Assembly: GCA_965644265.1 (NCBI GenBank) | Contig: OZ286462.1 | Location: 51,274,001-51,338,000 of the forward strand | Source: Glycera tridactyla | Lineage: Eukaryota | Direction of reading: 5' to 3' | DNA: 64,000 nucleotides | Part shown: piece by piece, positions 1,830 to 34,245 of the stretch | How positions within the stretch are numbered: position 1 is the stretch's first letter | Layout: each line of letters opens with the position of its first letter | The notes under the pieces: model-generated | What the model saw: the letters and a program-made list of their open reading frames with translations, nothing else | Told to the model about the DNA's origin: nothing | Database searches by the model: none | Translations under genes and position numbers: made by a program

Positions 1830-2400
1830 TGATATCGATCGGTTATTAACTGGTATGTTCGTTTGCTTGAGTTTCAGAGACATGGCGCCAGGAGTGACCC
1901 TTGTGGGATGCCTCATATCTTCCATTTCTCTGAGCTCGGCAGATGGGCATATCAGTGGACCAGCATGGAGTATGCGACCGCTACCAATCAAGTCCTGCCA
2001 AAATCTGTGATAACAGCCATATGCCAGGTCACGCCACCAGTGTAGCTTCAACACCGAACTTTTAGGAATCACAGGCTGACCTGGCTGGACGATGTATATA
2101 ATGGCTGAAAGTGTGCTCAATACGATCGCGAAAATTCACATGGACTGCATATTATCATTGATAAGTGGCCTCTTGTTGGCCTATAAGCAGAGACGATGTA
2201 GTATGAGGAAACCAGCTGATAGTCAGCCCAATGAACATTATGGTTGGTTGCTGTAATAATGGTGTGTGGTTGTCTGATTTCCATACGTAAAACTGCTTGC
2301 TTGTCTGTGATATGGGCCCCATGCACTGTCTGTGTGACAGACGATGTATGGTGAGTACATGAAATGTCTTGTTGACAAGATGATGAGTTTCTCACATGTG
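1830..2400 (-). pseudogene. Degenerate APE-endonuclease relic of an old LINE
   Basis: ORF 2117-2395 contains YYIVSAYRPT (compare APE ..IVSVYRPP). ORF 1827-2120 contains HPTRVTPGAMSL (compare APE EPTRVT..S.TL.DL). The two motifs are in the expected order on the minus strand. Confidence 0.45.
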
Positions 2401-3877
2401 GTGGCGTGAGTATGGTGGCATGACGAGGGTAGTCTCCTCCTGGATAACTACGCCAGATGTGGGGTGGAAGGCATCATGCAGTGAGTGGCTGAGGCCACTG
2501 TTTTATGATGATACTAGTTATCTCAGGATGGAGCTGCAGGCTGCCATGATTTATGAGATTTGCTTACATTCTTCTTTTTTCTTCTTCTTGACTATCTGTC
2601 TCTCTTCTGTTAACCCTTCTTTGCTTCTTTGAAGACTGTTTCCCTATCTACTTTCTCTTTTTGGTTCTTTTGAATCATATCTTGCTTTAATATATACCAG
2701 GTTATCGTTTGGTAACGATTTTGGGAAGTTTCAGTGTGTTGGAACATCAACCTAAGTCAAAATTGAGTAGAAACCGGATTTTATTTCGCCATTAGACCGC
2801 CAATCTGGTGGCGTGATTCTATCTATGATGAATGGTTAATGTTCCAAGTAACCATCCCGGATTGTAGTCAAATTCACTTACATTTGGTCGAAATAGAAGC
2901 TTAGGGCATCTTGTGATGTATATATCAGCAAATTGGCGATTTATGCCATTTAAAAATGGAAATATCATGTTTTTGGCTGCTTGAGAACATACCACGAGTT
3001 CTGTCAATATACGGAGCCGGGATGATACTGTACATCAGGTAAACTGAATATGTGCAGCACTAGCTGCGGATGTCATGAATTCCGTGTAGTAATGTGCAAT
3101 TTTCGGCAATAGGTTCGGGAAGAAATCGAAAAAGAGGCTATGCTTCAGAGTAATAGCATGCTCAAAGAAGCCCCATGCTCGGAGACCATGAGGTGAGAGC
3201 AAGCATCTCCCTGTGAAAAGTCGCCTTTATGCATTAACATGCATTATCACAGGATCACAGTGTTGAAATGTGTCTCTTTTTCAGCTATTATATATGTGAA
3301 TTCACCTCGAACTTGTCCAGTGGTAAAATTCCTAGAAATGAACCTATGCTGAAAATCAGCTTAGGATGAAAACGACTAAGCAAATGCATAGGATAGGTGG
3401 CTTAAGTTTCCTAAGCAGAAGGTTGAACTGAAATTTGCTGGGTTCATGGTCACGCATGCAACTCAGTCTGCAAACCAACTGGAAGCTGTGGAAACGTCTT
3501 TTAACACCACAAATGCTTAGTGAACTAGGGGAATCGCCTTGCTTCTTAGTAAGGAGGGTACTTGCTCCGAGGTCGTAGCATTCCTAAGTTGGGATGTATA
3601 TATCAGCGATTTTATTCAGGTCAGACACCATTGTCAGAAAATGGCAGAGTTTTAGCCAGACAATGCAGACATGTTTTGAAGTAGGTCAGAAAGGCTGCTG
3701 CGAGCAGTGGTATTCTTCCACCAGGCAGGCTGCTGATGCTGAAGGCTGGTAGGCTGGCCACATATTTTCAGTATCTAAGAATAACCATGAATCCAGGCCA
3801 GCTTGCATAAGCTCGTTCTGCCTTGGTGTCGGCAGCCATCTTGGTTGCCATTATGTATGCTGGTGCAGGGCACGGAA

Positions 3878-4021
3878 GTGACCTGGTTTCACTATTGACA
3901 TCAGAGAATGTGACCTGGTTTCACAATCGACACCAGGGCAAGACTTATAAGGCCCTGGTTGCTAAGGAAGATGTGGTTACTAAGGGAAATCAGGTCACAC
4001 TGTGTCAAAACCGGGTCACAT
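3878..4021. repeat. Small palindromic (MITE-like) module with 2+2 inverted copies of GTGACC(T/C)GGTTT and a central hairpin
   Basis: GTGACCTGGTTTCAC at 3878 and 3910. Inverted copies GAAATCAGGTCAC (3986-3998) and AAAACCGGGTCAC (4007-4019). Central ACCAGGGC/GCCCTGGT stem (3932-3939 / 3952-3959). Confidence 0.65.
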
Positions 4022-4507
4022 AGGCCTCATTTCTAGGAATGAGCCTTTGCAGCTCCTTAGAAGGCTGGGCAAGCACTCGAGGTGAAGCATTCCATTCTAT
4101 CTCAAGGATATATAACTGTGAGGGAAGGAATGAGAAGCAGAGATCTTCTGGGAGCCTACGAGGACGGTCGCTGCCGAGATAGGACGAACTTCAGCTTCTC
4201 AGTCCTTCCCACTGCATTCTTGTACCTGTTGGAAGAGGGAAGGAATAAAGGACTTCATTTAACCTGGACAACATCGTTGGTCATTCATGTTGGTGAGCCT
4301 GGGTGAACAAAAGTGAGCCTAGGTGAGCCAGCTCCAGCCTATGAAGAGTCGATCCTGTGAGCAATCCCCCGCTCTTATGTGTCTGAGATGTGTCTACTAG
4401 GTGCTACTAGGAGATCATAAGTACATTTACTAGCCCGGGTATCAACTGTCTGGGTGACTGCTCTACAATCCTTGCTCGTCATGAACACGCCTGTAAACCA
4501 TCTTTGA

Positions 4508-4648
4508 CAGATACATCGTACTTGGACGACAAATGGGACAGTGTTTATTGTGAGAAACGAGGGAGAAGAAGCCAACCCCATCACAAGCGAGGACGATTTG
4601 CCGCGCATCACCAACGCAGATGAAAACACTGATCAAAACCAGGGATAA
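4508..4648 (+). pseudogene. C-terminal fragment of LINE ORF1p
   Basis: Manual translation QIHRTWTTNGTVFIVRNEGEEANPITSEDDLPRITNADENTDQNQG*. This matches the W(T/S).(D/N)G.(I/V)F....I...(D/E)DL C-terminal pattern typical of CR1/L2-group ORF1 proteins. There is an in-frame TGA at 4505-4507 immediately upstream. Confidence 0.65.
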
Positions 4649-4782
4649 TTCGTTTTTTCCAACGAAAATTCCTCCCGACGGCACTAATTCAATTATTGTA
4701 TGAATCTTGTGTGCTAGTTGTTAATAGTAAGCATTTTGAATAATGGACTACTTTTTCTGTGCATTCTTATTGTAATACAAGA

Positions 4783-4940
4783 CAATGGCGGTTATATGAC
4801 CAACCGCTCCCATGATTCCTTGCGAAATTTTTCGCAATTACCGGACAAATTCTCCCATGATGCTTTGCGAATCTCGACACTCAGCCAATCAGCGAGCTCC
4901 TTCCTCGAAGGGCTAGGCAAGAGGTACAAAATGGCGGCCG
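4783..4940 (+). promoter_or_regulatory. CpG-rich Pol II promoter-like cluster inside the LINE inter-ORF region (2x Staf/ZNF143-like, CCAAT box, YY1)
   Basis: CTCCCATGATTCCTTGCG (4807-4824) and CTCCCATGATGCTTTGCG (4852-4869) resemble the Staf/ZNF143 site. AGCCAATCAG is at 4883-4892, CAAAATGGCGGC (YY1) at 4927-4938, and a second AATGGCGG near 4784. Confidence 0.6.
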
Positions 4941-5042
4941 AGACCAGAATCATGAACATCACCCGGTATTTCAGAACAACTTAATGCCTTCATAATCACT
5001 TATAGGACACGAATTATTGCTACTTCAAGAGTTCGGTTACCT

Positions 5043-5195
5043 ATGGACCGACTAACGCCACCAGACAATCTTCGGAGGTAGAATAATAACTTTGCTAGAC
5101 GATTTATCTCCCTACTAATCGAGTTGTCATAAGAGTTAGACTGCATTCATCGAAGGGTGCTATGTGTACTTGCTCGGCGGTTCGTCTCGGTCCAT
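5043..5195 (+). other. Predicted multi-branch RNA structure in the LINE leader
   Basis: Closing stem ATGGACCGA (5043-5051) / TCGGTCCAT (5187-5195), extended by ACGCC/GGCG. Inner stems GGAGGTAG (5074-5081) / TTATCTCC (5104-5111) and GCATTC/GGGTGC (5143-5160). Confidence 0.5.
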
Positions 5196-5593
5196 CAATA
5201 ATACTCAACACTATTTTGTCTTAATGCATCAGCTACTACCTTAATATGTTTAAATGGCTGGTTCATCTAGATTTTTGGGCCCACACCATGGAGAGGGCTG
5301 ATACCTGAACTGATGACCATGACCATTTCCTGCAGTGTAAATATAGTATAACACCATGAACAGCACATAGAATACTCTACTCAAAGACAGGGATATATGA
5401 ACTAGTTGCTTGAAAACTTGCATGTAAGAGCTACAATGGCAGGCTATCTCTAAAAGTGGTGTTTCTGACATAAGAATAGCCAAAGATGGACTGAGATCGA
5501 ACGAACTTGTCTCATATGCATAATGTTGTTCCCGTTTGAAATTTATCTTGTATTCCAGCATTCAACACTGCCTCAGGTATACGACTCACTTAT

Positions 5594-5688
5594 GGATGGC
5601 GTTTAATCCACATGGATACCTCATCCTCTAGTTGTGTCTGATCCTTTTTAGACAAGGATGGCGTTTAACCCATATGGGCACCTCATCC
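5594..5688 (+). repeat. Two tandem 33-nt bulged hairpins (62 nt period) with a compensatory base change
   Basis: GGATGGCGTTTAATCCACATGGATACCTCATCC (5594-5626) and GGATGGCGTTTAACCCATATGGGCACCTCATCC (5656-5688). Confidence 0.75.
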
Positions 5689-5993
5689 ATATTGAAAGAC
5701 AAGTAGATGTATTCGTCAAGTAACATGTTAATGAAAGGCATGTAGCCGCATTGGTGAATATTATGTCATTATCTACGATATCGACCCTTATTCCTCTTGA
5801 GATCATATCACAAGGCAGACTTGACTTAGTTTGATCTGAATGCAATATACCAGACTGATCATGCACTGATAGTATGGTAGTTTTACTCATGGGGATCACT
5901 TACTGACCAGAAAGGGACTGTTTCACTAACGAACAAGGTTGATCTATCACCCCCCCCCCCTCCCTTTGGTAATCTTTATATATCAATAGTATA

Positions 5994-8900
5994 TTGATCT
6001 CATATAGAATATCTCCAGACACCGTCCTGAGAGTAAACGTGTGTGAATGTGAATCTTATATCACCCATCGCTCAATAGCAGCTATCATAGTACACAGAAC
6101 ATTGTTTCTGTTTAAAATGACCCTATATGGGTATCTCCATAACTGTTTCCCAGACACCTTTAGCTTGCAGATACTAATATATCGATCCGGTGACATAGAA
6201 AAGAACCCTGGACCTAACGAAATCACTGTCACAAATCTAAGAGAGATCAGTAGAGCTAAGGGAATCACCATAGCCCACCTGAACATCTGCAGTATCTTCA
6301 ATAAGCTGGACCATTTAAGACACTTACTATTCAACAGTGACATAGACCTGATGTATATCACAGAAAGCTGGTTAACTGGACATATTACTGATGCAGAGCT
6401 GAAAATATCAAATTACAACATACTCAGAAACGATAGAAAAGACAAGAGAGGGGGTGGTGTTTGTCTGTTTATTAAAGAAAAATACAATTTCTCTAGAGTA
6501 TCAGAATTAAGCATAAGCAACAATGACATTGAAAGCCTAGGCATACAGTTGATATTGCCACATACAAGGAAAATTCTCATAACAGGTATTTATAGACCAC
6601 CCAATGGGAACATAGGGAATTTCTTTGACAACATGGGAGAGTTTACAGAATTCACACTGAATAATCCAGATGCAGAAGTGGAATACATTGGAGACTTTAA
6701 CATTGACTTGACTCAGAAAAAAGCAAGGGACACAGTATCTCTACTCAGATGGGCAGGTCTATGCGGACAACAGTCTTTCTTAAATGGTCCAACCAGGATA
6801 ACTGCAGATACTTCTACATGTATAGATCTAATCTTCTCAAATAGACCTGAAGTGATGAATCAAACAGGCCATTTTCGCCACGGAATCAGTGACCATGACT
6901 TGATTTTCTATAGCCGAAAGCTGATCAAACCCAAGGGAGAGACTAAATTTATTCACGCCCGGAGTTTTAACAAATATGATAAAACCAGCTTCTGTGAAGA
7001 CCTACGGAACACAAACTGGAATATCATACTAGCGCAGACTGACGCAAACGAAGCTTGGTCTATTTTTAAGGATATGTTCTTACCAATTTGTGACAGACAT
7101 GCCCCATATAAGAGGATCAAGATTAAGGGTAGCCTACCACCCTGGTTGACACATGAGTACTTCTCTGCAAGCGACCAACGTGACTATCTGTATAGAATCT
7201 TCAAGCAGACTAAGAATAAGGACGATGAAATCATAGCAAAAAGGGCAAAAAATTATGCAAATATGTTAAATCGAAACCTTAAGAAGGAATATGTTCAAAA
7301 TCAAATAGATCGCTTTAGAACTGATAGCAAGAATTTATGGAAAGTCATCCGGAATATTTTACCCAACAATAAATCTACAGATATGCCCAAAACTACAATC
7401 TGTGACAGGTCTGACAATACTGACATTGCAAATGCATTGAACCAGCATTTTGTAGGAGTGGGGCCAAAATTAGCAAGTATGCTGCCAAATGGTGACAGAA
7501 GACTAATCCCCGAAATAGACAATCTAGAACTGTCCTTTGAATTTCACAATATAGAAACCAGTTTTGTACTGAAGTCACTATCTACACTGTCCTGCTCAAA
7601 GGCAACAGGCCTTGATAATCTGCATGCCCAACTATTGAGGGATAGTAGTGAGATTGTGTCACATGCAATTGCCTATATAATGAATTTGTCAATTGGTACA
7701 AGTGTGTTTCCAGAGGAATGGAAGGAAGCCAAAGTCACCCCCTTGTATAAGGATGGAGACAGGAATTCTCCTTCTAACTATCGTCCAATTTCAGTCTTGC
7801 CCATCTTAGGTAAGATATTGGAAAGATTCGTACACGACCAGATATATGCTTTTATGAATGATCATAATCTTTTTCATCCATCCCAGAGTGGGTTCAGGAA
7901 AAATCATTCCACAACTACCTGTGCAATTTCTGTAACAAACGACATCCTAAGTGCAATGGATAGAGGATCTAGTGTTGGTGCTGTATTTCTCGACCTGAAA
8001 AAGGCTTTTGACACCGTCGACCATGCCCTGCTCTGTAAGAAACTTGCGGAGTACGGTATGGGCGACGGTGTCACAGGCTGGATAAATAGCTATTTGTCAA
8101 ATCGACATCAAAGAACGACTTTCCGAGACAAGCTCTCAGATAGAATGTTAATACGATGTGGAGTCCCTCAGGGTTCCATATTGGGACCATTGTTGTTTGT
8201 GATTTACCTCAATGATTTGCCGAAAGTACTACTGAATTCAAAAATCGCAATGTATGCAGATGACACTGCAATCTACTATGAAAGCACCACCACTGAAGAC
8301 ATAAATCTGAAATTACAGGAAGACCTGGAACTGATGGCAAATTGGCTAGTTGTCAATCGCCTGTCACTGAATGCACAGAAAACTAACACTATGCTTTTTA
8401 CAAGAATGCGGCTTTTTTACCAAGGCCAACTTGACCTGCATATTGGCAATACGCAATTGGAACAGGTTGAACACATGAAATATCTGGGTTTATACCTTGA
8501 CAAACGGCTTAGTTTTGACAATCATATTGAAAAATTGTGCAACAAATCAAAAGGCAAGTTATATGCATTGGGGAGAGTACGGAAATACATGAAACAAGAA
8601 ACTGCCTTGAAATTATACAAATCACTAATCTTACCAGTCATAGACTATGGTGATGTTTTATATGGAACTGCAAATCAAAATTCATTAATGAAAGTTCAAA
8701 GGATCCAAAACTCGGCCTGTCGAATTGTTTTGTTAGCTGATAGACTAACAAGCACAGCCTCAATGCATGAACAGCTAGGCCTTTTGAATCTTGCAGAAAG
8801 AAGATTGTATCATGACTGCATTTTTGTCTTCAAATGTGTTAAAAAACTGTCACCAACTTATTTGCATGAAATTATAACTCCACTGTATCTTCATCATGGT

Positions 8901-9080
8901 CGTAGTACCAGAGGAGTCACTCAAGGAAATGCTGTTGTACCAAGAAGCAGAACAAATGCTGGAATGCAATCCTTCTCCGCACGAGGTCCATTTACCTGGA
9001 ACAAACTACCACAAAATCTCAAGGAAATGGACGACCTTAGTTCTTTTAAATTTGCACTGATCAATTGGTTGAAAACCTGA
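5994..9080 (+). CDS. LINE ORF2p: 2A peptide + APE endonuclease + reverse transcriptase (first ATG at 6117)
   Basis: Uninterrupted 1028-codon ORF. APE motifs: HLNICS, ITESWL, RGGGVCLFI, GIYRPPN, GDFNID, PTRIT..TCIDLIF, SDHDLI. RT motifs: YRPISVLP, QSGFR, FLDLKKAFDTVDH, GVPQGSILGPLLF, YADD, KYLG. CR1/L2-type C-terminus (TWNKLP...FK..L). Confidence 0.97.
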   Translation: MISYRISPDTVLRVNVCECESYITHRSIAAIIVHRTLFLFKMTLYGYLHNCFPDTFSLQILIYRSGDIEKNPGPNEITVTNLREISRAKGITIAHLNICSIFNKLDHLRHLLFNSDIDLMYITESWLTGHITDAELKISNYNILRNDRKDKRGGGVCLFIKEKYNFSRVSELSISNNDIESLGIQLILPHTRKILITGIYRPPNGNIGNFFDNMGEFTEFTLNNPDAEVEYIGDFNIDLTQKKARDTVSLLRWAGLCGQQSFLNGPTRITADTSTCIDLIFSNRPEVMNQTGHFRHGISDHDLIFYSRKLIKPKGETKFIHARSFNKYDKTSFCEDLRNTNWNIILAQTDANEAWSIFKDMFLPICDRHAPYKRIKIKGSLPPWLTHEYFSASDQRDYLYRIFKQTKNKDDEIIAKRAKNYANMLNRNLKKEYVQNQIDRFRTDSKNLWKVIRNILPNNKSTDMPKTTICDRSDNTDIANALNQHFVGVGPKLASMLPNGDRRLIPEIDNLELSFEFHNIETSFVLKSLSTLSCSKATGLDNLHAQLLRDSSEIVSHAIAYIMNLSIGTSVFPEEWKEAKVTPLYKDGDRNSPSNYRPISVLPILGKILERFVHDQIYAFMNDHNLFHPSQSGFRKNHSTTTCAISVTNDILSAMDRGSSVGAVFLDLKKAFDTVDHALLCKKLAEYGMGDGVTGWINSYLSNRHQRTTFRDKLSDRMLIRCGVPQGSILGPLLFVIYLNDLPKVLLNSKIAMYADDTAIYYESTTTEDINLKLQEDLELMANWLVVNRLSLNAQKTNTMLFTRMRLFYQGQLDLHIGNTQLEQVEHMKYLGLYLDKRLSFDNHIEKLCNKSKGKLYALGRVRKYMKQETALKLYKSLILPVIDYGDVLYGTANQNSLMKVQRIQNSACRIVLLADRLTSTASMHEQLGLLNLAERRLYHDCIFVFKCVKKLSPTYLHEIITPLYLHHGRSTRGVTQGNAVVPRSRTNAGMQSFSARGPFTWNKLPQNLKEMDDLSSFKFALINWLKT
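6159..6215 (+). other. 2A-like StopGo (ribosome skipping) sequence FSLQILIYRSGDIEKNPG|P
   Basis: Exact match to the D(V/I)ExNPG|P consensus (GAC ATA GAA AAG AAC CCT GGA CCT, 6192-6215), preceded by a hydrophobic helical tract and located directly before the APE domain. Confidence 0.9.
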
Positions 9081-9345
9081 AAGAAACATATTGTTTATAT
9101 CATCCAATACTTGAGCTATTCCGATGTGATTACAAATCTATTTGTATGAGAGCCCGTGGTGAACCAGGAATAGACGCATGCGAGAAGGATTGAATTGATC
9201 ATATCGACAGAGTGAGAACCTTCGAATTGGGTGATTGCATCCTCGAGATGTCCCAAGTACTTTTCTCACATTGTTATCTTATAATGTGTTGTATTATGTA
9301 CACTCGAAGCAAAATAAAAGACTATTATTATTATTATTATTATTA
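9081..9345 (+). other. LINE 3' UTR with nested stem-loop, polyA signal and (TAT)n tail
   Basis: GTGAGAA (9212-9218) / TTCTCAC (9263-9269), TTGGG/CCCAA and CATC/GATG nested stems. AATAAA at 9313, then TATTATTAT... to 9345. Confidence 0.8.
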
Positions 9346-12104
9346 ATATGTCAGTATAATTTCAAAAATCTGTTGAGTCCATTCAAAAGTCAAATGACTG
9401 AAAATGGTTGAACCGTCAGTCTCATGAATTCGATCACTCAATCAGGACCAGGGTCGACACATCCCAGTATACATAGAGGAAGATTCGATGATGAAGGTTC
9501 ATCTGCAGTTTCAAGGGATCTCACAACAGTGAATTCACAGTAGCCAGTATTTGAGGCAACTATGTGGATGTATTTTGGACATGTCTATATCAGAATCTCT
9601 TATTTTGAGTTCCGCAAAACCTAAGATTTCATAACACGACTTTTCTCTCCGTCACTCTGTCCACTTCTGATTGGGACACTGCGAAAATCATTCCTGTTAG
9701 GTAACCAATTTCATTACTCTCTTATCACATGCATTTGTAGCTTTTCCTGGGAGCAATAATCAAAGAAATTAGAGAAACATTATTGGCATTCAGATTCAGG
9801 GTTTACCATCATAGTCTGTGTCATCAGTATTTCAAGTGATGCATCAACTTTTTTGAGGCCATTTCAGTGAAAATGAAAGATTATCCGAAATTCAGAGGGG
9901 CAGATGGTCATGTGGTGAGAATCCATTAAGGGGATGTTATCCTCAGAGAGGATTGTCGATAGATAGTGAAAAACCCCGAACAGTTCGTGAAAACGATGAT
10001 TAGGTCTGTTTTTGTGTTGTTGTACAGGACACTCAATAGCTTGTGGCAAGCTTGAATCAGTTTTTGTCAACAAGAGAAGAGTTGCACTTACATAGTCTTC
10101 TGTGCCCACATGTCATTAAATAGCCCTGAAGACACGCGGACCTTTGACCGCATCCTGTCTGCCCCCAGAGTTCACACGGCTGTGACCCAACATCAAAGAG
10201 TTTGCCAAGTACTCCGGGGAATTTCATGACCACTTTCAAATTTATGATCTAGGATATCATTACAGAGAAGAACTCTTGCTTACTTCATGTTGTTGGTTGG
10301 TTGAAGTGTAATGTAACATTAGTCCCATATGTGCTATATTGGGATGCCTGTATAATGGGATCATTAGAGAATCTCCTGGAACATCTGTTCGTATAAAGAT
10401 CTCAAATGAAGAATCATTTTGGAACATGATAAGAACATTGGATGGGAATTGCTTTGATTTTCTGTGCTGAAAGATTAATTCACACATGAACGAACCTACA
10501 AACTGCATCATCTGTGAATTTTTGGTAATCATTGCCAAATGATCGTAGCCAATCAGTACATTGTCAATTACAACCTCTCAGATTTTCGGGGGCCATTGGC
10601 TAATAACTTGGTAGCCAGCAGGCAAATTTAGTACAAATAGGCTACCCTGAGGTAACACTGTAGAAGCTTGAGAATATGGGATAGATGTTCTATACTTGAA
10701 CAGCTTCTTTATGTTTATTACTGAAAAATGCTTTGCTGCAACTGTGTTTGGAAATGCCTTCATCTTTCACGCTGTTGACAGTGATCAAACTTGAAGTTAC
10801 AAGATGATGTTGAAATCCTCATCAGACTTTTTCAGTGTGCGCACATATTTTGGCTTGCAGGGTTCGGCCTTTAAGGGATTTCATTCTAATTTACTTGCAG
10901 AGTCTTAGTAAATTACTTAATAATTGTACACCCAAAGTCTGTTGACAGTTTTGACGGGTGATAATTGGAAGGTAATTGACAGTCTTTCTATATGGAGAAT
11001 ACTGTTACCTCAAGTAACCTGGGCAAAGTCATTCCTTTCTCTCCAGGCATCTTTCAAAATCTTTGATTTGTATAATGAGGTAGAAGATTGCCTGTGAGTT
11101 CTTAGCTCCATCTTGAAATATCCTCTTTCTCAACAGTCTTGTGGTGAACACTCAAGGTTTTTATATGCTCTGCTTCCATACTTGTGAGAAAATACAAATA
11201 TATGGAAAAGAAAATGAAAAAGTTGGCGTTGATAGCAGTGCCCTCATTTGAGCCTGTGATCAAGCATAGCTTCCGGTTGTTACCATGAAGTTTGATATTT
11301 TGGTCAGGATCAATGAAGGGAATTTATCACTTGATAATGCATTAAATCAAATTGAAAATGAACATAATTTGACTCATCTTGGAGAAAAATTGGAAAATAT
11401 TTTTCTTAAAGATTGAAATTTTTTGAGGATGGAATATATGCATAAGTGCACAGATAACAATATGATACATCATGCTCAGATGAAAAGTTGAACATGGCTC
11501 ACATCCATTGAAGCTCATTATCATGTTCCTCAAAAGGTTGATCCTAATCAGTTGATGGATCTCTCAAAATTACAAAACAAAAATGACACCTGTAAGTGAA
11601 TTCTTTAATGTTGAATATGAACAAATCTTTTTTGAGTTTTCCCTTTTCGATTTTCACTTTTTAAGTTTGAGATCCACACTATCCATGGTTAGTTCTGGTG
11701 TAGTATGGTCAAAGATGGTGGATGTTAGGTAGAGTTATCTATTAGTACACGGATGTGTATCGGTGATTGATTTGAGGCGGCTGTCACAGCCATAGCTTTG
11801 AGTGAAGAAGCATGCTTTCTGCTGGTGTTTTCAAGTGTCGCAAGTAAATCACCGCGTGGCGAAGGATAATGTTACATGATGAAATATTGTAATGAGCACT
11901 GTATGAGGCCACCTTACACTCATGTGACTCACAAACGATCGTATATCAGCGAGAATCGATACCATTTCAGGTTGCCGTTAATAAATCATGGTTGTGTTCA
12001 AGTCAAGAATGCATAGCTTGGAAACAACGAGCGATGCCCTCTTTTCGTACCCTTTGCTGGCCACTGATGACAGGCATGATGTGATCTTGAAAGGGATTAC
12101 TTAC

Positions 12105-12140: not shown

Positions 12141-13870
12141 CTGAAAAGAGGTGTTGAGGTTGATAGGGCGGTTTGCAAGTCATGCACATGCATATTTCTT
12201 CATCCTGTACATTTCATCAGTTGCTTTCTGCCTTGATATCAATTGTCTTTACATGGTTAGTGAAACTGTCATCAAGGCTTACATGGTAAATCGACATACA
12301 TGCTCTCATTTCGGAGGAGCTCAGAGTGTTATGCAAAACTTGCTTTCAGAGATGATCAGAATTGAACAGAGATGAGGGAGAGTAACCTTTGAAAGCAGTT
12401 GTCAGTTAAAGGCCAGTTTCCTGCTTCAAGGTTGCTGGTCAAAGATTTCAGTATTGTAATATTTGCTGGATATTCGCTGCGAGAAAATCTCCATCCATGG
12501 CTATTGTTAGGCTACCAATTTAAATTATATCAGTTCAATTGATTTTTAGATAGATGGACCTCAAAATGTGGTTCTGCACATAGATCCAGACCTCCAACAA
12601 CAACAAACAATCCCAGCATGTCCCTATCATTTCTCTATTTCCATCTCCAAATTCTGTTCAACTGTGTTCAGGAATTGGGACCATGTTCATTTCATGCAGA
12701 AATGGTGAATTTCTGTCTTTTGAATGCCGTGAAGGTGAAAGCATAGATCAAGTACATCGTTTACTTGATTCATGGTGAAAGTTTAAAAAATTCAACTATT
12801 CATTGGGTTTCCAGTGATAATTTGTACATGAATCGATCTCCATTCAGAGAGTACCAATTTTATGTACATTGAGGGAAAATAAGATATGTCAAATGGTACT
12901 ACTCTGTTCATTGCGCTCTTAATTTTTCTATGATGAGTGCGTGAATATCGCCACAAATAAGATTTGACACAGGTTTTTAAGTATAAAGCATTCCTGTGAG
13001 GCAAAAGAGATAAATATACTTGGGAAGCTTGGTGGAGGATGAATCTATTATTGTGAGGAGGAGGAGGAACTGGTCGATAACTTAGCTCTCCCCAGACTAA
13101 TTCAACCCACATTACAACTCGTAATGAAACTAATCTGGTGTGTGAATCAATTTTAGTGAATGACCTATGAATAGGTGCCCCCATATACTTCCAGCTCTTA
13201 TAATACATACTGTGCTGTACATGAACGATCATCATTACTGATTTTCTAGGATATTTTTCAGTTTATGCATGATGTATGAAAATACTTAGTAATTTGCGTG
13301 TATAAGTTTATGTGGGTGTTGTTGATGAAGGGAGCAGTGGGGGTTTAATGATTGTACTTTCATCTATTATTTCAAGCTATGTGGTACATGTCTGAAATGA
13401 TAATACAGTATGGCTTGCTCATATTCGATGCAGCTCCACTACGTTCCCCTACTAATTGGGCTCCCAGTAATGCCTTGTCGGTGATCAGGTTCCAATCAAC
13501 GTGGAATGTACTGCCCATAGGCATTGTCTCATCGCGCGTCACGAGTCACGCGTTTGTGCGTGCTGATCAGCCCATTATTTCGCCAATACTGCCATTGTTC
13601 TGTCATCTGCTCGCACACTGCCTGCAATTGTAATTGCAATAAATCATCACTTGTAGCTCATTTGTGCACTCAACTAATGATGCGCTGATGAACGGGGTGT
13701 CAGAAATCGTCACATTTTATCCACCAAAATATTGGGATAGACAATCTCTTGATCTGTATTCTTTCAACTTCCCCATTCTTCTCCTGGATAGGTGAAACTC
13801 CTGTTAACAACTTTCTGATTTTTGCCCACAGAAATGATTGCTGTCCTTGAGATGCTTGGCTCCTATAGTA

Positions 13871-14048
13871 CAGTGAAACCTGTCTTGGGAGACCCCTCTT
13901 TTGGGAGACCACCCTCTAATGGGAGACTGCTCTTTGTCGGCTATTCTCTATTTGACATAGTCAAATATACCTCCAATGAGAGACCACCTCTCTTGAGAGA
14001 CCACTTTTCGTTGGCGTTTGGGGCGGTCTCCCAAGACAGGTTTTACTG
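13871..14048 (+). mobile_element. Tc1/mariner-type MITE, subfamily A (full length, 178 bp)
   Basis: TA flanks. TIR CAGTGAAACCTGTCTTGGGAGACC vs GGTCTCCCAAGACAGGTTTTACTG (1 mismatch in 24). Central palindrome TATTTGAC-ATA-GTCAAATA and repeated GAGACCACC motifs. Confidence 0.9.
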
Positions 14049-14472
14049 TATAATAACTCTCAGCCACATATATGATGAGTTTTTCTCAACTGATGTTTTC
14101 TTGTGGATGGCTTTGTTTTCCTTGAAAGAGAGCTTTGGAAAGAGACATCCAACAACTTTCATCTCCTGCTTGTTGATGCATTTTGCTGCCTGAAATAAGG
14201 GCAAGAAATATCTGTATTCAGTATATATATATGCGACTGATTGGGATGAGAAAAACTTGATTGAATTTATATTTGGTCAGGGGTGTGTTTTTCTTGGTGG
14301 TTCAATTTACCTTCATCAGCAGGAGTCTGCATTGTCATATTTCTGTGGTTGATTTCTGTCCAGTGAGAGTTGATGTTCTTCTGATGATATGGTAGGGGTG
14401 TTTGGCCATATGCACATGTCACTCATTCCCAGTGTAATTGCGAGCAAATTCCTCGTGGAGAATAATTGCAGA

Positions 14473-33069: not shown

Positions 33070-33242
33070 CAGTGAAACCTGCGACCAGAGATCCCCTGAT
33101 GAGAGACCACCTCCGGGAAACCGCTTCTGCTTGGCACCTTCTCTATTTGACATAGTCAAATAAACCACCAAGGAGAGACCACCACTTTTGAGAGACCACA
33201 TTTTGGTGCCTTCAGGGTGGTCTCTCAAGTCAGGTTTCACTG
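33070..33242 (+). mobile_element. MITE subfamily A, full length (173 bp)
   Basis: TA-CAGTGAAACCTG...CAGGTTTCACTG-TA with the central palindrome. Confidence 0.9.
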
Positions 33243-33344
33243 TATCACCCTAATGTCTGCTATGAGATGTTGAAGTCAAAGGACGAGAATTTTCGTCCAA
33301 GGATAGGTGACGCCTCCCTGATATTCACCGATCTGCCCATATTT

Positions 33345-33468
33345 TTTTCATGGCAGCTTTCCTTTCCAACATAGTCATATACATGTATACCTCTGACCAG
33401 AGATCACTTCTTTTGAGAGACGACATTTTGGCGACATTTAGGGTGGTTGATCGTTACATGTTTCACTG
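33345..33468 (+). mobile_element. MITE A, right-hand portion (degenerate)
   Basis: GGCAGCTTT...ACATAGTCA...GAGAGACGACATTTTGG...GTTTCACTG-TA. Confidence 0.7.
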
Positions 33469-33849
33469 TACAAGGTCTGTGTTTCACTTATTACAGTTGC
33501 TCATGTGTGTGTGGAGCTCAGGGTCACATGATGTGAAGTAGACAACCAATTTGACACATGCTGCCTGGGGATGAACATGTTAGAGAGCATGTATTTGTTC
33601 TGATCCATCACAGCTGTCAAGCATATATGCATCAACAACCACACTTAATTAATGATATGCCCATTTGGGTGCATGGGCTGACCCACATTGTTGTATACAC
33701 AGTTTTCCAGTATTGATTTCATAAGTCTGCTTTAGAAACTGTGTCAAATGCCAATCAAGGAAAAGAATATGAATAATCTCGAAGTATATTTCCCATCCAA
33801 GGATTCATTCTTTTCTTTGTGAATCATCCACATGGAGCTCTTTCATAGT

Positions 33850-33995
33850 ATCTTCAATGGGAGACCGCACTTTCAGGACAGCTTTTCTTTTCGACATAGT
33901 CAAAAACACCTTCGACGAGAGACCACCTCTTTTGAGAGACCACTTATTTGGAGAGACCGCTTTTTGGGGTGGTCCCTGATCACACGTTTCTCTCT
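33850..33995 (+). mobile_element. MITE A, internal portion (degenerate)
   Basis: GGGAGACCGC...TTCGACATAGTCAAA...GAGAGACCACCTCTTTTGAGAGACCAC...GGGTGGTCC. Confidence 0.7.
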
Positions 33996-34069
33996 ATCCA
34001 GGCACCAAATATCAAAAAGGAGTGATCTGAGGTTTTCAAGTCCTTCCTTTGATTTGCTCTTCATTAATA

Positions 34070-34245
34070 CAGTGAAACCTGTCTTGGGAGACCCTCTTTG
34101 GGAGACCACCCTCTAATGGGAGACTGCTCTCTATCGGCTCTTTTCTGTTTGACATAGTCAAATATACCTCCAATGAGAGACCACCTGTCTTGAGAGACCA
34201 CTTTTCATTGGCGCTTTGGGTGGTCTCTCAAGACAGGTTTTACTG
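34070..34245 (+). mobile_element. MITE subfamily A, full length (176 bp), closely related to 13871-14048
   Basis: TA flanks and TIRs. About 13 differences from the 13871 copy by manual alignment. Confidence 0.9.

Follow-up and report, generated by a model that had tools for sequence, protein, structure and literature searches.

APE-type non-LTR retrotransposons that carry a 2A motif have been reported in the Rex1, L2, CR1, Crack and Ingi clades; the motif is defined as GD(V/I)ExNPGP in the N-terminal region of ORF2, and most of these elements encode a single ORF, without ORF1 (Odon et al. 2013, PMC3708506). 2A-led LINEs are, as such, already known. In human L1, the 5′-UTR contains an internal promoter with a YY1 box, located at the extreme 5′ end of the element and upstream of ORF1, and spliced L1 transcripts containing only ORF2 exist. 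LINE 5′-UTRs in general are typically CpG-rich and, as in human L1, may use YY1. We know of no LINE for which a Pol II promoter has been established in the interval separating ORF1 from ORF2. On the host side, TATA-less housekeeping promoters use ZNF143/Staf, NF-Y and YY1.

The locus analysed here lies in a 64-kb window (the whole stretch of DNA under analysis) and contains a 2A-led LINE ORF2 and, 1.2 kb upstream of this frame, a cluster of promoter motifs. A preliminary description had read both as one LINE (about 4508-9344), truncated 5′ inside an ORF1 of which 46 codons remain, with an element-borne CpG-island promoter in a 1.47-kb spacer and an RNA start near 4915. This model requires that i) the block lies within the LINE, ii) a real ORF1 lies upstream of the block and iii) transcripts from the block give ORF2 protein. 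Taken as a whole, we regard it as doubtful. The explanation that we tentatively prefer is that the locus combines two separate entities, a host promoter at 4477-5249 and a young LINE (about 5250-9342) that inserted directly behind it. On the narrower question of whether the LINE or the host owns the promoter, the chances are roughly even.

An intact 2A-led ORF2 and its relatives

The coding part of the element and its 3′ end comprise the following features.

5973-6116, + strand: ORF2 frame open upstream of ATG 6117 (48 codons)
6117-9080, + strand: intact LINE ORF2, 987 aa from its ATG without internal stop, with 2A leader, APE and RT
6189-6215, + strand: 2A motif GDIEKNPGP, residues 25-33 from ATG 6117, fitting GD(V/I)ExNPGP
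about 6300-6896, + strand: APE endonuclease domain (PF03372), N-terminal to RT
about 7770-8495, + strand: reverse transcriptase domain (PF00078)
9081-9344, + strand: LINE 3′-UTR, CpG o/e 1.04
9313-9318, + strand: AATAAA in the 3′-UTR
9324-9344, + strand: (ATT)7 tail, a microsatellite forming the LINE 3′ end

In agreement with the preliminary description, the 2A motif lies ahead of both the APE and the RT domains. Pfam gave 26.0 bits for PF03372 (cut-off 24.5) over residues 103-301 of the 1028-aa frame and an E value of 2.6e-40 for PF00078, with profile positions 6-204 of 205 covered. By its sequence, ORF2 is that of an APE-type non-LTR retrotransposon (LINE) and appears coding-competent, with a ribosome skip predicted between G (6210-6212) and P (6213-6215). 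Like the 2A-bearing LINEs of PMC3708506, the element ends in a microsatellite and not in poly(A), but its 2A ends 33 residues after the first ATG, compared with 40-80 in that study; counted from the opening of the frame, it ends at residue 74.

No relative with more than 41% aa identity was found in the collections searched and, because the best one is only 35% identical, the family itself is undescribed in them. NPGP occurs near the N-terminus in 12 of 120 database relatives. The closest ones by identity and path length are L016, L013 and L003, LINEs of CR1/L2 kind with esterase-type ORF1s (GDSL with or without CCHC), and L003 shares the 2A ahead of the APE domain. In these three loci the gap between ORF1 and ORF2 is only 0-99 nt, and their ORF1s, C-termini included, are unlike the 46-aa frame of the window. 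This short spacing stands against the preliminary model and favours an element without the upstream block.

A different architecture is found in L001, L008, L010, L011 and L015, in which ORF1, on the same strand, is separated from ORF2 by a non-coding, ATG-rich spacer of 0.87-1.4 kb; the collinearity of L001 and L011 from ORF1 through ORF2 to the tail shows that the spacer belongs to the element. These five related loci speak for the preliminary model. The spacers of L001, L008, L010 and L011 (coiled-coil, RRM-like or NADAR ORF1; 0.9-1.4 kb before an APE and RT ORF2) resemble that of the window. NADAR-bearing ORF1s have been reported in oyster Tx1 LINEs (PMC12477816). Members of this well-supported, related clade have a CpG-rich 5′ module, formed by ORF1 and the proximal spacer, and a CpG-poor ORF2. 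In the case of L001, CpG o/e is 0.93 in ORF1, 1.11 in the first 450 nt of the spacer, 0.51 in the rest and 0.53 in ORF2, and the window gives 1.01 for the 46-codon frame, 1.09, 0.52 and 0.43, a numerical agreement that supports the preliminary model and counts against a host promoter. Nevertheless, the long-spacer LINEs differ from the window in having poly(A) tails and no 2A, in ORF1s unrelated to the 46-aa frame and in an ORF2 identity of only 30-33%. The window ORF2 and this clade are sisters in FastTree (support 93) and part of a trichotomy in IQ-TREE, which weakens the parallel. Their spacers also lack the combination of promoter motifs: neither SBS (ZNF143/Staf-binding site) nor YY1 motifs occur in those of L008, L010 and L011, and that of L001 contains one CCAAT box and one AACATGGCGG without an SBS/CCAAT/YY1 cluster. 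This motif comparison covered L001, L008, L010 and L011, the L015 spacer being examined for repeats only.

The promoter motifs and the frame upstream of them

The region upstream of the LINE frame contains the following features, the motifs being assigned by sequence match.

4477-5249, no strand assigned: CpG-island-like block, 38 CpG, o/e 1.09, GC 0.43
4508-4648, + strand: 46-codon open frame plus TAA, A-rich and CpG-rich
4785-4791, + strand: upstream YY1-core-like ATGGCGG
4807-4826, + strand: ZNF143/Staf-binding-site-like element 1, CTCCCATGATTCCTTGCGAA
4852-4871, + strand: ZNF143/Staf-binding-site-like element 2, CTCCCATGATGCTTTGCGAA, 45 bp from element 1, start to start
4883-4892, + strand: canonical CCAAT (NF-Y) box, AGCCAATCAG
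4928-4938, + strand: perfect YY1 box, AANATGGCGGC / AAAATGGCGGC, the only perfect one in the window
4931-4984, + strand: uORF within and after the YY1 box, ATG 4931 in strong Kozak context, 17 codons

The CpG-rich block, the two ZNF143/Staf-like sites 45 bp apart, the CCAAT box and the YY1 motif are thus all present where the preliminary description had placed them. The block is the sole CpG-island-like stretch of the window, in which CpG o/e is 0.39 overall (64 kb) and at most 0.75 in any other 773-bp stretch. GC and CpG shift sharply at about 4480-4510, as the preliminary model would have it, and the last CpG, at 5188, is followed by a 310-bp gap without CpG. The two 20-nt sites are near-identical and share the pattern CTCCCATGAT(T/G)C(C/T)TTGCGAA, which is matched twice versus 0.03 times expected; when an independent 17-mer SBS consensus is used with at most 3 mismatches, these two sites alone match in the whole 64 kb. 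The motifs follow the order SBS, SBS, CCAAT, YY1/ATG on one strand, inside a block with CpG o/e of about 1. Judged by these features, the cluster is real and non-random, a putative promoter of housekeeping type, from which transcription is predicted to start near 4900-4925.

The order of the sites within a CpG island, ending in a YY1 box that overlaps an ATG with good Kozak context, is that of host housekeeping promoters, from which the locus differs in the GC content of the block, only 0.43, in the negative GC skew downstream of the cluster, in that no downstream host exon was identified, and in that ATG 4931 opens only 17 codons unless spliced. As in human L1, the LINE coding sequence is preceded by a CpG-rich regulatory region that includes a YY1 site, and ORF2-only RNAs could provide RT/endonuclease in trans; however, the L1 promoter precedes ORF1, whereas in the preliminary model the cluster would lie between ORF1 and ORF2.

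Might the cluster be no active promoter at all but a relic in decay, a piece of some other mobile element or motifs juxtaposed by chance? The modest GC content of the block points in this direction, as do the SBS-like sites, in which 3 of 17 positions depart from the textbook consensus. Against it, the 64 kb contain no SBS-like matches other than these two, which stand 45 bp apart on the same strand, beside a canonical CCAAT box and the single perfect YY1 box, in the only block with CpG o/e of about 1, and we consider inactivity very improbable. In this respect, CpGs retained in a window depleted to 0.39 would imply a long-term lack of germline methylation or a very recent origin.

As for the putative ORF1, the frame is open over 4508-4645 (46 codons) and closed by TAA at 4646-4648, 1468 nt ahead of ATG 6117, the first ATG in the ORF2 frame, so that both the frame and the spacer of about 1.5 kb had been correctly described. 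Its AT skew of +0.405 is in the top 0.6%, and its A-richness is bounded exactly by frame start and stop. Its identity as an ORF1 tail found no such confirmation. The only Pfam match of the peptide is to Baculo_FP_2nd, a putatively ORF1-type match that remains below threshold (16.4 bits, cut-off 24; E 0.0077). Comparison by hhalign with the NADAR-ORF1 profile of the relatives gave no match (probability 0.04), blastp and tblastn against the ORF1s of L001, L003, L009, L010, L013, L015 and L016 found nothing, phmmer against 1.84 billion (1.84e9) representative proteins returned spurious tandem-repeat matches only, and there was no match in the PDB. Codon usage scored against ORF2 falls below the null mean, unlike that of ORF2. 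The A-richness up to the stop and the sub-threshold match favour the preliminary model and are left unexplained by a host promoter, but the ORF1 claim fails all significance tests, and on these comparisons the case for an ORF1 upstream of the promoter block is weak. The want of significant homology to anything speaks for a host promoter.

The boundaries of the LINE

Three features bear on the 5′ end of the element.

5241-5249, + strand: left copy of a candidate target-site duplication, TTAATATGT, an exact 9-bp repeat
9343-9351, + strand: right copy, TTAATATGT, sharing 2 nt with the tail end
5250-6116, + strand: non-coding leader upstream of ORF2, 867 nt, CpG o/e 0.41, 26 ATGs

If the candidate duplication is real, the LINE would start at 5250. 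TTAATATGT is the sole exact repeat of at least 9 nt between the sequence adjoining the tail and the 3.2 kb upstream, and its left copy sits about 60 bp past the last CpG of the island. However, about 0.25 (25%) of shuffles also produce an exact 9-mer adjoining the tail, the right copy shares two of its bases with the tail, and there is a rival, imperfect repeat (12/14) at 5759-5772. Composition points to the same boundary: excising 5250-9351 leaves flanks that are alike (dGC 0.01-0.05, typical), whereas excising 4508-9344 leaves flanks differing by 0.10 GC, as only 3-6% of adjacent windows do. In addition, the CpG content of the leader (0.41) is that of ORF2 (0.43) and not that of the island. 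Both the flank discontinuity and the candidate duplication at 5241 stand against the preliminary model, and there is no sign of the block being repeated along with the LINE; no second copy of the LINE was found within the 64-kb window.

According to the explanation that we prefer, the LINE would occupy about 5250-9342, with its 867-nt leader, the 2A-APE-RT ORF2, the 3′-UTR, AATAAA and (ATT)n tail, flanked by the 9-bp TTAATATGT. The TATA-less CpG-island promoter at 4477-5249, in which a pair of ZNF143/Staf sites is accompanied by a CCAAT box for NF-Y and by a YY1 box with an ATG inside it, would belong to the host. The LINE would have inserted in the sense direction some 0.3 kb past the predicted start site, into the 5′-UTR of a host transcript or into its first intron. 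In favour of this explanation, the cluster is non-random, its motifs are ordered and oriented as is canonical for host housekeeping promoters, and it lies in the one CpG island that the window contains; the lack of ORF1 in most known 2A-bearing LINEs (PMC3708506) also favours it. Against it, neither side of the element yielded a host exon or gene, and a LINE placed in sense 0.3 kb below a housekeeping start would be expected to be counter-selected, such adjacency being rare a priori.

Another reading places the 5′ end of a single-ORF, 2A-type LINE near 4480-4510, the block being its ordinary 5′-UTR promoter, with no ORF1 and the 46-codon frame a product of chance or a decayed relic. The CpG-richness typical of LINE 5′-UTRs, their possible use of YY1 (human L1) and the composition break at about 4480-4510 are consistent with it. 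So is the single ORF of most 2A-bearing LINEs (PMC3708506). Nevertheless, the motif order at face value puts the start about 400 bp inside the element and, because RNAs from an internal start lose the promoter, this promoter would not be inheritable without a second start upstream. The objections from flank continuity and the candidate duplication apply here as well, the A-rich frame is left unexplained, and we hold this reading to be quite unlikely.

From the block to ORF2 protein

Between the block and ORF2, the leader contains three further features.

5594-5626 and 5656-5688, + strand: two 33-nt direct repeats forming small hairpins (41-nt hairpin repeats; z -2.4 and -1.75)
5950-5960, + strand: C11 run
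5988-5989, + strand: first AG after the C11TCCCTTT tract

An RNA started in the block would have to carry ribosomes past 33 upstream ATGs between about 4925 and 6117, several of them in strong Kozak context; in the leader, ATGs are sparse only from 5890 onward. The structured RNA elements of the preliminary description were not borne out. Compared with dinucleotide shuffles, 5250-6116 is less stable (z +1.68), and no excess folding stability was found in 5570-5710 (z -1.07) or in 4950-5249 and 5967-6116 (z +0.29, +1.34 and -0.32); lower values were reached only by the two small hairpins listed above. An Rfam search of the window gave no match. With 33 upstream ATGs and no excess RNA structure, a simple subgenomic ORF2 mRNA from the block is disfavoured and, because of the ATG-filled leader, translation of ORF2 from an RNA started there would need splicing or internal ribosome entry.

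A possible splice exists. Downstream of ATG 4931 there is a single GT donor, and splicing it to the AG that first follows the C11TCCCTTT tract would put this ATG in frame with ORF2; of the 33 upstream ATGs, 31 would be deleted together with the hypothetical intron 4966-5989 (junction 4965/5990), and the 2A would lie 86 residues from the N-terminus. This arrangement counts for the preliminary model, but an in-frame outcome is roughly a one-in-three chance event. A fuller version, which we consider rather unlikely, is that an element-borne promoter lies between a swapped-in ORF1 and ORF2, that transcription starts near 4915, that removal of this intron splices the ATG of the YY1 box in frame and that 2A frees the 86-residue leader from APE/RT.

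What would each outcome mean? If the promoter is the host's, the locus is an ordinary young LINE insertion near a gene start, whose sole notable point is a coding-competent, 2A-led sense LINE 0.3 kb below the start, where host read-through is possible. If it belongs to the LINE, this would be the first case of a Pol II promoter sited between ORF1 and ORF2, and the supply of RT/endonuclease would be uncoupled from ORF1 and from full-length copies, which bears on the mobilisation of SINEs and retrocopies. Such a promoter would also suggest a solution to a problem that the comparison exposes, namely a LINE clade whose ATG-rich inter-ORF spacers of 0.9-1.4 kb are uncrossable for scanning ribosomes. 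The spliced, element-borne arrangement, if true, would yield an ORF2-only mRNA even from copies without ORF1 and would explain how ORF2 is expressed in LINEs with spacers of about 1 kb, such as the related NADAR-ORF1 clade.

The LINE and the CpG-rich block upstream of it

What can be considered secure is that the window contains a new LINE, coding-competent and belonging to the known 2A-led APE-type class, which adjoins a promoter-like CpG island. The window, animal DNA with GC 0.39 and CpG o/e 0.39 overall, carries on the + strand a frame that is open from 5973 to 9080 and encodes 987 residues from its first in-frame ATG at 6117. Two Pfam domains lie in this ORF2: PF03372, an APE-type endonuclease whose 26.0 bits exceed the cut-off, and PF00078, a reverse transcriptase (E 2.6e-40). 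Its residues 25-33 conform to the 2A consensus GD(V/I)ExNPG|P (Odon et al. 2013, PMC3708506), bearing out the preliminary description of an ORF2 led by a 2A peptide, for which skipping is predicted. An N-terminal 2A in LINE ORF2 has already been described in several clades, most such elements having a single ORF (PMC3708506), and NPGP lies close to the N-terminus in 12 of 120 database relatives. The LINE, its intactness and the 2A motif are real.

Features of the LINE and of the upstream block (window positions)
4807-4826 and 4852-4871: near-identical 20-mers resembling Staf/ZNF143 binding sites (SBS-like), 45 bp apart
4883-4892: canonical CCAAT box, AGCCAATCAG
4928-4938: YY1 box, AANATGGCGGC, the sole perfect one in the window, with ATG 4931 in strong Kozak context
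6189-6215, + strand: 2A motif GDIEKNPGP in ORF2, with LQILIYRS directly N-terminal to it
9313-9318 and 9324-9344, + strand: AATAAA and (ATT)7, the LINE 3' end, 3' of the ORF2 stop and 3'UTR

Upstream of ORF2, the block 4477-5249 has a CpG o/e of 1.09, against 0.75 or less in all other 773-bp stretches of the window, and the two SBS-like sites, the CCAAT box and the YY1 box reported earlier are all found inside it. Matches to a Staf/ZNF143 consensus of 17 nt, with up to three mismatches allowed, are confined to the SBS-like pair in the 64 kb (both strands), and 0.03 matches are expected to the pattern of the 20-mers themselves. The order and orientation of the cluster are those of host TATA-less promoters (ZNF143, NF-Y, YY1). 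In all likelihood the cluster is a genuine Pol II promoter, whose motif order would predict a transcription start at about 4900-4925; that it is non-functional seems highly improbable. A snRNA, tRNA-Sec or other Staf-dependent RNA gene was rejected because Rfam and tRNA searches detected no tRNA or Rfam-family gene in the window.

The left flank is rich in GC (0.49) but poor in CpG (0.34); its minus strand holds a near-perfect YY1 box, AAGATGGCTGC, at 3832-3842, whose ATG opens a 23-codon frame starting MAADTKAERAY, and short tandem duplications, GTGACCTGGTTTCAC..GAC and GTGAGCCTRGGTGA, lie at 3875-3935 and 4294-4330. The LINE 3'UTR (9081-9342) has a CpG o/e of 1.04, like the upstream block, while ORF2 (0.43) and the leader between block and ORF2 (0.41) are depleted. 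Among related proteins, P0042 has three successive 2A-like NPGP motifs (residues 17, 100 and 190) followed by a PHD finger, and P0010 and P0007, with the 2A at residues 442 and 268, respectively, have 270-440 residues of unknown function N-terminal to it; in such elements a sizeable upstream protein is set apart from APE/RT by 2A.

ORF1 and the inter-ORF spacers of related LINEs

The 46-codon frame at 4508-4645 had been read, with its stop (4648), as the tail of a truncated ORF1. This identity is not supported. The only Pfam match, Baculo_FP_2nd, scores 16.4 bits (E 0.0077), below its cut-off of 24, neither PDB nor NCBIfam gives a match, hhalign finds none with a profile of the relatives' ORF1, and phmmer against 1.84e9 representative proteins returns just four bacterial tandem-repeat proteins, with scores summed over repeats. 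Codon usage is also unlike that of ORF2. A Pfam search of every open frame in 3588-4700 revealed no ORF1 further upstream, and the 2A was the only match in blastx of 2500-6220 against the 120 relatives. On the + strand the region is strikingly rich in A (its AT skew of +0.405 ranks in the top 0.6% of 141-bp windows) and, since this skew runs from about 4500 to the stop codon of the frame, the frame may be what is left of some coding sequence, its identity as ORF1 being weakly supported at most. That the block is an ordinary 5'UTR promoter of a LINE with no ORF1 is improbable.

How are ORF1 and ORF2 spaced in related LINEs? Among the 11 loci compared, L001, L010, L011 and the degenerate L008, from one assembly, combine a coiled coil, an RRM-like region and NADAR in an ORF1 on the strand of ORF2; a 0.87-1.4 kb non-coding, ATG-rich spacer lies between this ORF1 and ORF2. 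NADAR-bearing ORF1s have been noted in oyster Tx1 LINEs (PMC12477816).

Related LINEs with a C-terminal NADAR (ADP-ribose-processing) domain in ORF1
L001: 3765-8868
L010: 2712-8928
L011: 8001-12166
L008: 4165-8802

Collinearity between L001 and L011 extends through ORF1, ORF2, 3'UTR and poly(A) tail (65-78% nucleotide identity), but their spacers are unalignable, so the spacer belongs to the element and evolves fast. A further locus, L015, has an esterase-type ORF1 and a 955-nt gap to ORF2. The long-spacer relatives are CpG-rich in ORF1 and proximal spacer and CpG-poor in ORF2, and the CpG o/e values of L001 (0.93, 1.11, 0.51 and 0.53) nearly equal those of the window (1.01, 1.09, 0.52 and 0.43). 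The SBS/CCAAT/YY1 cluster occurs in none of the L001, L008, L010 and L011 spacers; the pair of a CCAAT and AACATGGCGG (YY1-like) in L001 was discarded as a conserved spacer promoter because the same-family L011 lacks it. These data weaken the premise of the preliminary description that ORF1 and ORF2 are normally separated by short spacers. The loci closest by identity or path length (L016, L013 and L003) differ: an esterase-type ORF1 is followed by a gap of just 0-99 nt. FastTree groups the window ORF2 with the long-spacer clade as its sister (support 93) whereas IQ-TREE gives a trichotomy, which makes a long spacer insecure as a trait of its own clade. Within this region of the LINE tree, long inter-ORF spacers do exist, and they are not assignable to the family of this LINE.

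Other features of these loci deserve mention. Besides the terminal poly(A), L001 (5248-5274) and L010 (4715-4745) carry an internal run of A27-A31, 85-170 nt past the ORF1 stop, which is not present in L011, of the same family as L001, and L012 has the ORF1-NADAR module alone; together this suggests that ORF1 is an exchangeable or separately retroposed module. The L008 spacer (5040-5710) contains about eight copies of the palindromic AGACTCAATCGAGTG in loosely tandem 48-70 bp units, resembling a binding-site array or promoter monomers. In L009, a 768-aa ORF (2260-4566) lies upstream of LINE ORF2 on the same strand; its N-terminal hydrophobic stretch, signal-peptide-like by eye, and its C-terminal ones make it look like a membrane/envelope-type glycoprotein, not an ORF1.

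Ownership of the promoter-like block

Within the 64 kb, self-BLAST found no second copy of the LINE. A word-indexed protein search gave no relative closer than 35% identity, an exact-protein look-up no record of the ORF2 protein, and a scan of metagenome, prokaryote-genome and viral contigs relatives of 41% at best.

Our tentative preference, at somewhat less than even confidence, is for a host promoter in the block and a separate LINE at 5250-9342. The sole exact repeat of at least 9 nt shared by the tail-adjoining sequence and the 3.2 kb upstream is TTAATATGT, and its left copy (5241-5249), shortly after the last CpG of the block at 5188, favours this insertion, though about 25% of shuffles give such a match by chance and an imperfect rival repeat (12/14) lies at 5759-5772. 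Removal of 5250-9351 joins flanks with a typical GC difference of 0.01-0.05, which favours a block outside the LINE, and a leader CpG o/e equal to that of ORF2 favours a LINE start at 5250. The cost of a host promoter is a rare adjacency and an A-rich 46-codon frame left unexplained. Four points favour the rather unlikely alternative of the preliminary description, a single element at about 4508-9344 that includes the block: a priori a host promoter rarely lies just 0.3 kb 5' of a LINE in sense orientation, the A-rich frame is delimited by its own stop codon, composition breaks abruptly at about 4480-4510, and some relatives have a long-spacer architecture. Yet an element-borne block needs a GC discontinuity of the flanks (removing 4508-9344 leaves a difference of 0.10, found in just 3-6% of adjacent windows), the 9-mer at the right place by chance, an ORF1 without detectable relatives and an architecture differing from that of the nearest relatives, and it puts the predicted start site 400 bp within the copy.

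Amino-acid composition of every open frame in the window revealed no convincing host exons. The eight N runs (131-242 nt, 17679-48182), all within simple or low-complexity repeats (GA, GT, CAGG, CATT), were rejected as masked host exons because simple repeats, not splice sites, are at their borders. Several open frames on both strands (13822-14193, 33070-34227 and 55911-56090) have the peptide motifs WSLK.GGLS..V.LTMSNR and VSQDRFHC in common, which hints at a repeat family, SINE-like or a piece of a TE, dispersed across the window.

The leader and the route to ORF2

The structured RNA elements proposed for the leader (5250-6116) did not materialise: it folds worse than shuffles (z +1.68), 5570-5710 is at z -1.07, and the z values of three further pieces of 150 nt range from -0.3 to +1.3. 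Small hairpins are limited to two 33-nt direct repeats (5594-5626 and 5656-5688, 62-bp period), with z of -2.4 and -1.75, in which one U-A pair of the first copy is a compensatory C-G in the second, with just two copies to compare. The stretch from 4925 to the ORF2 ATG contains 33 ATGs (shuffle mean 20), several in strong context (4931, 5288, 5436, 5486 and 5658) and all opening short uORFs; cap-dependent scanning through the leader to ORF2 is implausible. Only the final ~230 nt (5890-6116) are nearly ATG-free.

A speculative escape would be a splice from donor G 4966, the sole GT donor before the 4931 uORF stops, to the first AG (5988-5989) after a C11TCCCTTT tract. Such a join would put ATG 4931 in frame with ORF2 (1041 aa) and leave just two of the 33 upstream ATGs, 31 being spliced out; the 2A would then lie at a distance of 86 residues from the N-terminus. 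With a weak donor and with four of the nine possible acceptor AGs in frame, this fusion is a prediction, not evidence. Sense-strand C10-C14 runs occur upstream of ORF2 in the window (5950-5960), in L010 (5070-5083) and in another locus, L002 (5723-5732); a common element was discarded as probably chance, such runs being frequent in the L002/L010 assembly.

The complete model of the preliminary description, combining an element-borne promoter, an upstream ORF1 and a productive ORF2 mRNA, is improbable. If true, a LINE promoter sited between ORF1 and ORF2 would represent a novel variant, one of high interest.
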